Source of the DNA: Styela clava
Taxonomy: Eukaryota
Length of the DNA stretch: 64,000 nt
NCBI RefSeq assembly: GCF_964204865.1
Contig: NC_135255.1
Span: 992,001-1,056,000 of the forward strand
Direction: 5' to 3'
The translations under genes were made by a program, and so were the position numbers. Positions 39,501 to 45,500 of this stretch are shown piece after piece. The notes under the pieces are model-generated. The model searched no databases. It was not told the origin of the DNA and saw nothing but the letters and a program-made list of their open reading frames with translations. Position 1 is the stretch's first letter. Each line of letters begins with the position of its first letter.

Positions 39501-42500
39501 TTGACTGAAATATATATCGATGCTAATGTGAAATTTTGAGGAACAAAGTGGAAATACAGCCCGTATAAAATTCTTATTTGAAACTAATGAAATTTTCGGT
39601 AGCAAAATATTTAAATTTTGAGTATTCGAATGATCAATGCTAGGAAGTGGAATTTTTTCCACCTCTATTCTGTAAAAAAAAAGATATTGTTCTAAAGACA
39701 TTAACAGTGTCGAATCTACATTCAACCATTGTTTTCATGATTCATATGACTTGTTTATAGACATTCTGCGCACAATAATACATACAGCAATATTTCTATG
39801 GTCTTTTGGATAATCAAAAAACATTGAAGTTTCGAAGATTTGAAAAAATGAATGCAAGATGTTAATACCCAGGCTGCGGTACATAAATTTTACTATTTCT
39901 TACGAGACACTAAGTCAAAAATTTTCTTGTCTTCAGCAACTGGCTTCACTTGGCTTGTAAGAAGGTTGAGTTTCACTGGAGCTTTATTTGCCTTAAAAAC
40001 AAGTATCACAATTTTCAGAAAGATACAGTACCACCGTATCGAAAAAGGATATATATTTTCAATATGTCAAAACCTGCAAAATTGTAACAAAATCAGAACT
40101 TTTTGAATTAATAGATATGAAATTGAGCAGGAAAAGAAAATACAACTTCATTTTTAATTATATATATATTATATACATAAGTATACTATATCTATCTATA
40201 CTTTAGCAAAGTGTGCTTATTTTCTATGTCCTGGGATAAATTTAAAAATATAATCTTTAAATTACATATTAACAGTCAAATTATTGAATAAAACTCACAT
40301 TGTTATGAGATATAGTGAGATATCCGTCACTAACTGTGCATTTCCGCTTTTGCCAAGCCTTTCGCAATCCTTCACTGCGCTTCATCAAATAGCCAACCTT
40401 TTCATTACCAAATTCTTTTAATCCCTGCGAGTCAAATAATCAGGTTTATTGAAGGAAAAAAGAACCTGGTCTGCTGTTTATGTTTAATGAAATGAATAAG
40501 CTGTAAATCATTTGATATATATTGTGTATAAGCACATCAATAACAAATCGCAAACTCAGACCTGAAGTTGATGAAGATTATAAACACTGGCTGAGGATTT
40601 GGAAGAATTTGAATCACCGACTGAAGTTCTGAGTAAATTTCGTAATTCAACAAGTTGCCTTCTTTCCTCATCTTGTGATTGACGAATCTGTGGAAGAAGA
40701 CAATTAAATTCATTTTCACATGTAGTATCATATTATGGTACCATTTTCCAGAGTTTATTTTTTTTTCTATAAAAGTGTATGAATAGATCACAGGCAATTC
40801 AGCTGATTATGAAATTGGCAGATGCCATTACCAACAACATTGGTACCTTACATACATACATACATATGACATCATGACCAAAGTATGTAAAATTAAATTT
40901 GCATTTTAAGCAACTGTGGTAACTTGCTTCACATGGGTTTACCAAGGCAATGTCTAAACCACTCCCTCGAAGTTGATAGTTGCTTCAGAAGAGATAAAAT
41001 CAAGATAGCACGACATATATTCAAAAAACACTATAAAATATAAAAAATATCAGCACTTTTTTGTGATGGATCACTTTCGGCCGTGATTACTAATTGCACA
41101 TATTTTAAAACTACACCATCTCATTGAATTATTGTTAAATATTAAAATGATTTTTCATTAAAATTCACCGAATGAATTAATGGTTGCACTAGGTTTACTT
41201 GGAAATCTTGAAGAATCCAAAAATATGAATGATTGTGACATCATAAACAACAATGAGATATAAAACCAACTCACAGAATGCAAATTTGCAGAAAGTTCAG
41301 TGGCATATGATTTGAAATGTTCTGTAACTCGACACCCTTCGCTGAAAAATCTGAAAATCAGATTAAAAATTGAGATTTTATTACGTTCATTGAAAGAGGA
41401 CCAATAGCTAAAAAAGAGTTAAACCAATTAGTACTGAAATTCAAACAATGAATAAATTAGAAACAGAGAATGAAAAGGAGAAAGAGAAAAGGACAAAAAA
41501 GAAAAAACAAAAAATGAAAAACGATGAAAGTCCTAAAAAAGATGGTCAAAATAAACATGGGAAATCAGAAAAGTACAAAGAAGATCTGATAGATGACAAG
41601 GAAATTGATAAAAAACATAGGAAAAATCGAAAACATGAAAAGAATAAAGAAGTAGTCGAAAAACATGAAAAACACAAAAACAAAGACAAGAAAAAGAGAA
41701 AAGACAAGAAAAATGAGAATGATGCAGATCAATATAAGACTGCAGTAGTACAATCTGATAGTTCACCTTCCCAGGGATATGACAACAAAAAAGACAAAAA
41801 AAGAAAAAGCAGTGAAAGCAAGGATGAAACAACTCCATACAATGAAAAAGGTATGACCATTACAAGTTGCCTTGAACTTTTCGATACCCTTCCACTTTTT
41901 TTAAAATAATTTTTCATTATTATTTAATAGGAACTTAATTTCTTGTTATTATAGAAATGGATACTCAAAAACTATTTAATGTACCTTAGAAATTCCACAT
42001 ATCTCTAAAAGTTAAATTGATTGACGATGTATGACTGACTCTGGTTATTTACAGCTTAATGGCTAAAGTCCACACTTCTAGGAACTATTCTCATATCGGT
42101 TGTGCGTGATAACCATATGAGAGATCTTGGTGGGGCAGTACGTTATGTGTTGAACCCATTTATCAACTTTATTTTCCAATAAAAAATTGGTTTCAGGTTT
42201 CAGAGTCAGGTGAATGTTGCAATTTTGTTTAATAGCCCAATGTACTTATTTCATAATTTAGTTTATGTAAATTATTGCCAAAATAATACTAAATTACCCG
42301 AATAAAAATTTGAATCCTAAAAATAAAGAAAAAATCTTTGCTCCGTAGGAGATGCTGCAGAGGCAGAAAAGGCACAATATAGAAAAATAGACAGAAAATC
42401 ATTGTATGAAATAACAAACGAGGGATTGGAAATATATGATGTAAAGAGAAAAAAGGAAAGGTTGGACATAAAAGTAAATTATAATTCACAATGTGCATAA

Positions 42501-45500
42501 TTTCCTAAAAAATAATCCCTAAAAAAGTATAATGAACTCATTATGTTGTTTTGATATGTTTTTTAATTGATACCCATTTTCTGATATAAACCCTATTTTA
42601 GTCAAGTCAAGTCATCATGACGATTAATTCATAAATAAGTTATGGAAAAATTTTTCAACACTGTAGCATCTAGAAAATGAATGCAGCAAGTTCTTGATTG
42701 TAAAAACCATTTAGATTTAGAATATTTTCATTAGAAAATTTTTCATTTTGTACATTTCACATATAATGATCAGAAAAAAATAGACTTCATTCAGCAGATG
42801 ACACTGTGTGGAGGAAAATCATTCGAAAAAATGGTTTATCTCAACTGTGTCCCATTATATTAAAATTCCCAATCTACAATATTTGGTTATGCGAATAGAA
42901 TATCTTCCTCATCTGCATTTTTAAAAAAAATTCAGAATGTATTCAAAATGATTGCACGACACTTTCATTTTCAAATTTATTTTTTTAAATGAAGGAGTGG
43001 GCATTTTACATTGGTATATGAAATAAACACACTGATCTTGATACGGAATAATTTTACAGGGAAGGTTGTACAGAATTTTGCCCCAATATAAAGCACACAA
43101 GATCTAATAAAACAGTATACACATTTAAGCTTGAGCTTATTATAGACTAAAAGAAATGAAGGAAATGAATACTCCCTACAAAGTAGTGCTAATACCTGGT
43201 GATAACCCTGGTGTGCGATGGATTACTACATTTGGATTACTTGGAGCAACTCTGATGTTTTTTGTTGCATGGGGTTCGGCTATTTTTTACATAATGACAC
43301 CGGACATATTGGTGAGTATTGAATTGTTTTTAGAATGTTACCAGACTTACAAATCAAGATCATAAAGATTGAGAATTTGACAACAATATGCAAAATAGGC
43401 ATTTTAAATATTCAGTTTTATCAAATCTGAAATTGACGCTCTCTGAAGATTTAGAATTTAAATGTTAATGCTTTTAAGTAATATTTCCCATTCATTTGAT
43501 TGTTTATGCAAAAATGCAAAAAAAAAGTTAAGAATATAAGAAAAATATAAATGTGGACATCTCCACACTAATAAACCATATATTTTCCAATCAATTTTTT
43601 TTCAGACAAATGAAACGATAACAGAACAAAATATTGGTATTTGAAGAAATATAAAAGAATCTTACGTGTTTTGCGCATGATAGTAGTCAATGAGATGTTG
43701 CAATAAATCCACGCCTTTTTTCGTTTTAATTTCATTTGCTTTTATCAAATACTGAAACAAAATTGTTGTTATTGTAGCAGTTTTTCATACATAAAGATGA
43801 AGGATGAACACAACATGCAGAAAATGATTTTGCAAAATATGATGATGATACCATAGTGATATAAATAAAAAATGAAACGATAAATATTGTAACTGAAAAC
43901 AATCTGAAAAAGTTCTAAGAGTTATTTTCAACTAAGTAGTATACAGAAAGATAATATGAACATGATTACAAACAACTACACGTTTATCAGGACAGTATAT
44001 TCAGATAAGGTTTTCGTGCTTAAAAATATGTTCTTATAACAACAAGTAGGCTATGCGAATCTCTGTCTATAAAATCAAATTCTCCAAAATATTAGGCTAT
44101 CTAGTGTATCATACCTCGCACATTTGTAATTGAAACATTCTTCTCTCTTTCTCCATTTCTTCTGCAATCTAATAAAAATACAAATAAAATAATGTTTCAT
44201 TTTAGATCAAAATTGACACTTCAATATAGTATTTAAAAGCAATGTTATGCAAAACGCATAGTGATAATGTCAACGTCAGGATAACGATATCTATATAAGG
44301 TTTTCTTCATTACTCCCACTTTATTACAGCCCTTTGGTTTGTCCTAATTAGTATTGGTACTGAAAACAAGTGGCCAAAGCTCACTTCAGTAAAATAAAGT
44401 ACCACTGTAAACAGAGCCCACTCTTTCTTTTTGACATGTGAGCATGACGGCTTCATGAACGCCCAACTCAGCTTCTAATGCCCCATGGAAGTTATTACGA
44501 TTGAAACTTTCTTATGCCCCACTAAAAAATCTCTGGCCCTCACCATGTTCAGACTTGAAATGAACTTCAGACTTAAGCAAGTATAAAATAACAAAAACCA
44601 TTTTGATTCCGTAGGTTAAGTTAAAGCTTCATTTAGACAAAATACATACGTCAATGTAAACTATACATACCTCACCACCACTTATTTCATTCCTAATCAT
44701 TCCGGCTTCTTTCGCAAGTTGGCGTTTCTCTCTTTCCACAGTTTTACTGCATGAAAAATACAGGAGCAAGATTATTATTGATGGGGTTATAATGAACGGT
44801 ATGGTATGCAGTTGCATAGTCAATGATTTTAGTTATATATTAGCAAAAACACCTCAAAAATAATAGTCGAATATATAGTATGACTGCCAGCAGTATTTAG
44901 ATTTCATGTTTCAAGACCGGTACAGTAAAACTATCTCAATCAATAAATGAAAAATGTTCGAACCGCACATTTTATTTACAATAGCTTGATCAATGAGACC
45001 AATTAAGACTTTCGTATGAAATGCAATTTCATTTTCATTTGCGTTTTTTATCCTGTAATTTTCTAATAAGATGCGAAGATATATTCAGCAACATTTACAA
45101 TGACTAATCAACCACACTATGTTAATTAAAATGAGCATGAGTCAAAAAAATTCAACATAGGATATATAAAGTGTCACTCCCACTTTTTACTTTGAAATGT
45201 TTATTCAAATACCAAGAAATATTTTTGCTGACGGTATGAAGGCTTTAAACATTAAGCTAACTGTGAAGGCGGCGTTACATTTGTTACACAGAAAAAATTC
45301 CATCCTTGTTAGTCGAACTTCACAGTTAGTCATAGCATGTTATTATTGTTATATCAACACAAGAGAGTATTGAGAGTATGAGTACAAAATTATCATCAAT
45401 TCCCGAAAATTATATGCGGTACGGTAACTTACCAGTACCGTACATGAAGCTGTAAGACTAATATTTGATCGCAGAACCACTTAAAATAAGTTAAGAACAG

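Follow-up and report, generated by a model that had tools for sequence, protein, structure and literature searches.

A 64,000-nt window of the Styela clava genome (NCBI RefSeq assembly GCF_964204865.1, contig NC_135255.1, positions 992,001 to 1,056,000 of the forward strand) contains a pair of genes on opposite strands. The window is the whole stretch of DNA that was analyzed, and positions given below are counted from its first nucleotide. The minus strand codes for an orthologue of ASAP. One intron of this host encloses a short gene of four exons on the plus strand, LOC120332089. We consider it likely that LOC120332089 is a genuine, single-copy ascidian gene, nested in antisense in the ASAP intron, and that it codes for a membrane protein of the tail-anchored type which belongs to an uncharacterised family.

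The coding exons of the host extend from 27556 to 50644 (minus strand) in the window, according to the listing of open reading frames (ORFs) and to Pfam. Along the minus strand, the Pfam matches are to BAR_3 (E 0.0035, weak), PH (E 0.005, weak), ArfGap (E 7.6e-17), Ank (E 5.7e-14) and SH3_1 (E 1.8e-6), with a proline-rich frame (32956-33147) between the ankyrin repeats and SH3. This is the order expected for ASAP (BAR, PH, ArfGAP, ankyrin, proline-rich, SH3), and by its predicted domains the host is an ASAP orthologue. The exon upstream of the host intron (exon 8, 43666-43751, minus strand) codes for 28 residues of the BAR domain and is followed by the donor GTAAGA. The BAR_3 match lies in this exon and is below the curated cut-off, as expected for an exon of only 28 codons. 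The exon downstream of the intron (exon 9, 41275-41350, minus strand) codes for 25 residues, and the frame is continuous between the two exons via the split codon AC|A. The host intron itself (41351-43665, minus strand) comprises 2,315 nt; its splice sites were read from the sequence.

In this intron, four plus-strand segments can be joined in frame. The coding part of exon 1 (41448-41850, 403 nt) starts with the ATG and holds 134 codons plus 1 nt; it codes for an N-terminal region which is K/E/D-rich and predicted to be disordered. Exon 2 (42349-42460) has 112 nt (3n+1). Exon 3 (43146-43311, 166 nt) carries the conserved core of the family, a juxtamembrane motif and a transmembrane helix. The coding part of exon 4 (43606-43644, 39 nt) contributes 12 codons of an acidic C-terminal tail and a TGA stop. 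The segments add up to 720 nt, which corresponds to 239 codons with one terminal TGA. AG precedes and GT follows at each internal exon border. The donors are AAG|GTATGA, AAG|GTTGGA and TTG|GTGAGT, and pyrimidine-rich tracts are present at two of the three acceptors. Compared to introns, the exons contain much A and little T (exon 1: A 58%, T 13%; introns: T 35-37%). In this DNA of about 30% G+C, the open frame over exon 1 has a stop-to-stop length of 165 codons, which was matched in none of 5000 shuffles of the exon 1 composition and in one of 2000 shuffles of the whole intron.

The listing of ORFs represents the nested region by two pieces only, 41448-41909 (153 aa) and 43156-43365 (69 aa), and exon 2 has to be obtained by frame arithmetic. 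Only an exon of length 3n+1 can link the donor at 41850, in the frame of exon 1, to the frame of exon 3. There are 15 AG..GT exons which could serve as a link. Nine of these are sub-variants within the open stretch of 42349-42460, and 42349-42460 has the best splice signals among the 15. The exact borders of exon 2 as given here are thus a prediction from splice signals and from the RefSeq model. At its other end, the frame of exon 3 is open for three codons upstream of the acceptor (A-Y-Y; 43135-43146, plus strand). Together with the R from the split codon, this mimics A-Y-S-R / S-Y-F-R of the Ciona proteins described below, which is probably a coincidence. A longer exon 3 is excluded because a stop codon is found at 43132-43134.

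The gene had been regarded as unrecognised in an initial sequence-only reading of this DNA, but it is already known as the uncharacterised RefSeq entry LOC120332089. In a scripted comparison, the joined model is identical, residue for residue, to XP_039255229.1 (P0001), the "uncharacterized protein LOC120332089" of Styela clava (239 aa), which has the UniRef name "FAM133-like". The other claims of that reading which concern the locus stand: the coordinates of the four GT-AG exons and their joining into a protein of 239 aa, the two ORF fragments, the antisense position in an ASAP intron between BAR-domain exons (as confirmed by the order of Pfam domains on the minus strand), and the absence of a curated family. 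Homology searches were run exon by exon, and the public record XP_039255229.1 was used for full-length queries; the scripted exon joining served frame arithmetic and the identity check only. The 153-aa ORF over exon 1 matched a single protein in a collection of 5.8 billion sequences, and this was XP_039255229.1, with 100% identity over 134 exon-1 residues. The nested gene is single-copy, with no paralogue in the 377-Mb Styela clava genome. Pfam has no match for exons 1, 2 or 3, nor for the first four family members found. A literature search on the gene and protein accessions returned no paper.

Few relatives were found. An exhaustive phmmer search, in which XP_039255229.1 was compared to 1.84 billion cluster representatives, yielded no more than four proteins, one of which is the query itself. 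The others are a protein of 204 aa from Ciona savignyi (H2Y725, P0002; E 9.6e-14), an ORF of 62 aa from an unplaced Logan assembly contig of 1,530 bp (P0003; E 8.5e-12) and an unplaced entry of 111 aa from MERC (P0004; E 2.3e-6), which is presumably a catalogue of metatranscriptomes from marine eukaryotes. In a profile word search, XP_002132098.1 from Ciona intestinalis ("protein PXR1-like", 200 aa) was found in addition, as were isoforms X1 (P0007) and X2 (P0006) of C. intestinalis LOC100175555. When the Ciona, Logan and MERC proteins were compared to the window by tblastn, they matched exon 3 with 52-60% identity (E 1e-12 to 5e-20; 56-60% for the Ciona orthologues). Similarity to exon 1 is weak and includes a Y-K-x-x-V-x-S-D/G-S patch shared with the N-terminal regions of the Ciona proteins. 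Both ends of the Logan ORF resemble those of the genomic Styela ORF that spans exon 3: its first residues are M-x-x-x-x-T-P-Y-K-V-V, and shortly before the border of exon 3 it ceases to resemble the Styela protein. These ends suggest that the Logan ORF was predicted from unspliced DNA of a different species.

Styela and Ciona are members of different ascidian orders, between which neutral intron sequence would no longer align. The conservation of exon 3 across this distance therefore speaks for a real, constrained coding gene. A restriction to the Styela lineage, which had been considered in the sequence-only reading, is contradicted by the orthologues in two Ciona species and by the two unplaced sequences. 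The exhaustive phmmer search and the profile search did not return a family member from outside tunicates, and all named members are from ascidians. The family is probably restricted to ascidians, but the shortness of the conserved core and the fact that two sequences are unplaced make its limits uncertain.

According to the alignments, the N-terminal regions of the family are basic and poorly conserved, and the block beside and inside the membrane helix is strongly conserved. This block starts with the juxtamembrane motif (residues 183-195; 43177-43215, plus strand). All six aligned sequences agree in Y183, V185, L187, P189, G194 and V195, as well as in L204 and F211 of the helix. Six further residues, L203, T207, W214, G215, A217 and Y220, do not vary among the first four sequences; the Ciona isoform X2 is the only one in which they are lost. 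There are 15 invariant columns in the four-sequence alignment (14 in motif and helix, plus M1) and nine in the six-sequence alignment. The family motif, which is present in the Styela protein, reads Y-[KR]-V-[VI]-L-[IV]-P-[GA]-[DE]-x-x-G-V, followed by the helix LL-x-x-T-x-x-x-F-x-x-W-G-x-A-x-x-Y (the helix consensus can also be written LLGATL-x-LF-x-x-WG-x-A-x-x-Y). The Styela protein also shares the basic low-complexity N-terminal region, the length of about 110-240 aa and the position of the helix less than 30 residues from the C-terminus. In full-length members, the N-terminal net charge ranges from +12 to +21, with an isoelectric point of 9.5-11.0, and the tails have 8-26 residues.

The Ciona orthologues (H2Y725, XP_002132098.1 and LOC100175555), all of which are uncharacterised, have the same organization as the Styela protein, namely a basic low-complexity N-terminus, the same motif, one helix and a short acidic tail. 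The tail encoded by exon 4 is partly conserved with C. savignyi (T-x-E-x-I-T-E). However, the Ciona proteins have 200-204 aa, compared to 239 aa in Styela. About 20 extra residues of the Styela protein originate from exon 2, and its N-terminus is of a more mixed charge (K/E/D). The Ciona proteins start with M-G/A-R-Y-K/R-K-x-L-x-P-x-A-G, which does not occur in the Styela protein. Isoform X2 from C. intestinalis keeps the juxtamembrane motif, but helix and acidic tail are replaced by an unrelated basic tail. X2 may result from splicing and be soluble, or it may be an artefact of annotation.

Hydropathy analysis assigns one transmembrane helix to the protein (residues 197-223; 43219-43299, plus strand), with a mean hydropathy of 1.54; no other 19-residue window exceeds -0.45. 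A signal peptide or other N-terminal hydrophobic segment was not found by this analysis, the highest value for 10 residues within the first 60 aa being -1.21. AlphaFold2, when supplied with the six-sequence alignment, is confident only for a helix at 193-222 (predicted local distance difference test, pLDDT, 78-93), and its whole model is poor (mean pLDDT 56, predicted template modelling score 0.19). Both methods agree with the initial reading of the sequence, in which a long K/E/D-rich region is followed by one membrane helix near the C-terminus. The ESM Atlas provided no usable feature match, its structural neighbours all have template modelling scores <0.5, and its model is equally poor. The PDB chains contain no match to the family profile at E 10. 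The net charge of residues 1-196 is about +17, and K-K/R-x-K/R patches occur several times in this region. The tail that follows the helix has 16 residues and a charge of -3 in Styela and 23-26 residues and a charge of -2 to -3 in Ciona, while that of the MERC relative has 8 residues and a charge of +2.

Tail-anchored proteins have no N-terminal hydrophobic segment and have a single helix with at most about 30 residues after it (here 16). From the lack of a signal peptide, the single C-terminal helix, the basic flank on its N-terminal side and the acidic tail, we infer that the protein is tail-anchored, with its N-terminus in the cytosol and its C-terminus in the lumen. Sorting of tail-anchored proteins is determined by the combination of helix hydrophobicity and tail charge (PMC5450235). 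Since a hydrophobic helix combined with a non-basic tail is the signature of the endoplasmic reticulum (ER) type, the membrane is most probably that of the ER or the nuclear envelope rather than that of mitochondria or peroxisomes. An N-E-T sequon in the tail, to which the sequence-only reading had drawn attention, is indeed present (229-231). It is, however, not conserved, Ciona having T-G-E-M and T-N-T-E at this position, and it is located only about 6 residues beyond the end of the helix. Oligosaccharyltransferase usually needs a distance of 12-14 residues from the membrane. N-glycosylation at N229 was therefore rejected as a family feature.

The automatically assigned names "FAM133-like" and "PXR1-like" reflect nothing but lysine-rich composition. 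FAM133 and PXR1/PinX1 are, like LOC120332089, of low complexity and rich in K, E and R. Both are soluble proteins of the nucleus or nucleolus and are not known to have a membrane helix. Membership in either family was rejected, as neither is among the four hits of the exhaustive phmmer search, and no G-patch or other Pfam domain was detected. In its organization, LOC120332089 rather resembles the tail-anchored class as represented by Sec61 beta, RAMP4/SERP1, cytochrome b5 and emerin, all of which lack a signal peptide and have a cytosolic N-terminal region, one helix close to the C-terminus and only a short tail in the lumen. The cytosolic part of Sec61 beta and RAMP4 is also basic and disordered, but that of LOC120332089 is much longer and more lysine-rich than in these two small proteins. 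A sequence relationship to any of these examples was not detected by Pfam, by the profile search against PDB or by hhalign to Sec61 beta.

Several points weigh against the assignment as a genuine gene for a tail-anchored protein as modelled here. The junctions, the transcript ends and the strand of the nested gene are predictions from genomic sequence. Eight sequencing runs guessed to be RNA contain 13-77% of the sampled words of 41250-43800 (four additional runs are probably DNA), but such numbers would be compatible with spliced mRNA of either gene as well as with pre-mRNA or DNA. RefSeq may have obtained its model largely ab initio, and the signals used are those on which the sequence-only model depends as well. 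In the tblastn comparison, no match to exon 2 was detected in the Ciona proteins. The Ciona-type N-terminus (M-G/A-R-Y-K/R-K) was not found in Styela, so that the true 5' end may differ. No member of the family has a homologue of known function. Location, topology and binding partners are all predictions from sequence features, and the basic tail of the MERC relative implies that the assignment to the ER is not uniform across the family.

Some of these points would be accounted for if the gene is real but its transcript differs from the 239-aa model. Exon 2 might have other borders, there might be an extra upstream exon (coding or non-coding), the 5' end might be provided by spliced-leader trans-splicing, or an alternative 3' exon might lack the helix. 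The lack of similarity of exon 2 to Ciona proteins and the absence of their conserved N-terminus fit this explanation, as does the fact that the frame is preserved by any of the 15 AG..GT middle exons. Isoform X2 from C. intestinalis, which exchanges the helix for an unrelated basic tail, may illustrate the last of these variants, and trans-splicing is frequent in ascidians. However, the selected exon 2 has the best acceptor and the best donor, nine of the 15 alternatives are merely its sub-variants, and RefSeq arrived independently at the same model. Also, the plus strand from 40200 to 41448 does not contain an open frame which resembles the Ciona N-terminus. We regard a transcript that deviates from the model as unlikely.

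Alternatively, LOC120332089 might be a paralogue, highly diverged and with an extended N-terminus, of Sec61 beta or of a comparable tail-anchored ER protein that associates with ribosomes. Both have D-x-P-G-V/L-K/R before the helix and W-G within the helix, which in this case would have been inherited: the Sec61 beta exons from Styela read ...YNEDSPGLKV |, which can be compared to D-N-P-G-V-R-W...F-F-V-A-W-G in LOC120332089. Both are of the tail-anchored type and have a basic, disordered N-terminus. Yet the Pfam domain Sec61_beta (PF03911) does not match any family member tested, even at E 10, and the family profile, compared to all PDB chains, finds nothing at the same threshold; this set should presumably include Sec61 beta chains from translocon structures. 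The probabilities assigned by hhalign are 2.6% and 0.4% for two Sec61 beta exons from Styela, and the two proteins differ by 5 residues in the distance between motif and W-G. Membership of LOC120332089 in the Sec61 beta family was rejected based on the Pfam, PDB profile and hhalign results, and we consider this descent extremely improbable. The Sec61 beta gene of Styela clava is located at contig C16:261785-262687 (minus strand), where an intron directly after ...SPGLKV splits the family-defining region.

It could also be argued that there is no gene at all. Open frames and GT-AG pairs would then line up by accident in an intron rich in A, and the public entry would be an ab initio artefact that owes its name to low-complexity similarity. 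Names that mirror lysine-rich composition, the missing Pfam family and a model derived from genomic sequence would agree with this view. It is, however, hardly credible in view of the 52-60% identity of exon 3 to predicted proteins from two Ciona species and to two further sequences, the architecture shared by relatives of 111-239 aa, the failure of 5000 composition-matched shuffles to produce a 165-codon frame, and the filing of one relative under MERC, presumably a marine transcript catalogue.

Nested genes on the opposite strand of their host are common in animals (PMC3814207, PMC5174743). LOC120332089 is like other nested genes in that its entire coding region resides in one intron of a larger host, on the opposite strand. 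Typically, neither the coding sequences nor the untranslated regions of nested genes overlap with the host (PMC3814207). LOC120332089 differs in this respect, as its short host intron is filled to 95% by the coding span (41448-43644, plus strand), which is wholly inside, so that an overlap of the untranslated regions with host exons is difficult to avoid. There are 97 bases between the ATG and ASAP exon 9 (a distance of 98 bp), and only 21 nt separate the stop codon from exon 8; these distances and the AATAAA inside exon 8 had been correctly described in the sequence-only reading. Two candidate poly(A) signals were read from the sequence on the plus strand. A variant signal, TATAAA (43650-43655), follows 6 nt past the stop. 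The only canonical AATAAA downstream of the stop (43702-43707) is located inside exon 8 and is the reverse complement of the ASAP codons GAT TTA TTG (D-L-L). If this AATAAA is used, the choice of Leu codons in ASAP would be under a double constraint. Because either candidate would end the transcript at or inside exon 8, the 3' end of the nested gene likely overlaps with this exon, as judged from the geometry of the locus.

If LOC120332089 codes for a tail-anchored protein as we favour, this protein would be inserted post-translationally via the GET/TRC40 or the EMC route. The conserved polar or small residues of the helix (T207, W214-G215) probably dock the protein to a partner in the membrane, and the lysine-rich disordered region probably binds a polyanion, which may be RNA or ribosomes, chromatin or acidic lipids. 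Because the stop is only 21 nt from exon 8, transcription is likely to run in antisense across this exon and its 5' splice site.

It is tempting to combine these proposals into one reading. The family would be an ascidian (perhaps tunicate) innovation, an adaptor which is tail-anchored in the ER or nuclear envelope. The juxtamembrane motif would be a docking site, for example of the type by which LC3-interacting regions bind ATG8 ([W/F/Y]-x-x-[L/I/V]), an idea which builds on the acidic or phosphorylatable run that precedes Y-x-V-V/I-L. The lysine-rich part would tether ribosomes or chromatin, and transcription over exon 8 and its 5' splice site would tune splicing or expression of ASAP, with the two genes being anti-correlated. 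As a whole, this combined reading is highly speculative and we attach very little credence to it.

Other features of the window are found outside of ASAP. About 5 kb beyond its 3' end, an uninterrupted ORF of 319 aa (21903-22862, minus strand) codes for an aldo/keto reductase (Pfam PF00248, E 3e-54). This ORF is intronless while its neighbours have many introns; it may represent a retrogene, or else a gene that just happens to have one exon. An ORF at 19782-20306 (minus strand) contains a nuclease domain of the GIY-YIG type (PF01541, E 2e-7), which is known from Penelope-like retroelements. ORF blocks that are almost identical are located at 18769-19020 and 58459-58710, and at 15585-16365 and 56710-57340 (minus strand). 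As these blocks are found on both sides of ASAP, copies of one repeat family flank this gene.

The spliced gene model, rebuilt from raw sequence alone, matches RefSeq residue for residue, although this adds little biology beyond a tidy description. Ascidian proteins which have been named "FAM133-like", "PXR1-like" or "uncharacterized", the former two being automatic misnomers, can be united into one small family with a conserved membrane anchor, which has no Pfam entry and no detected relatives outside ascidians. If it is true that the 3' end of the nested gene crosses the BAR exon of ASAP, the locus would be a compact model of sense-antisense interference between a nested gene and its host. 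Such interference would be open to experiment, as ascidian embryos are easily electroporated.

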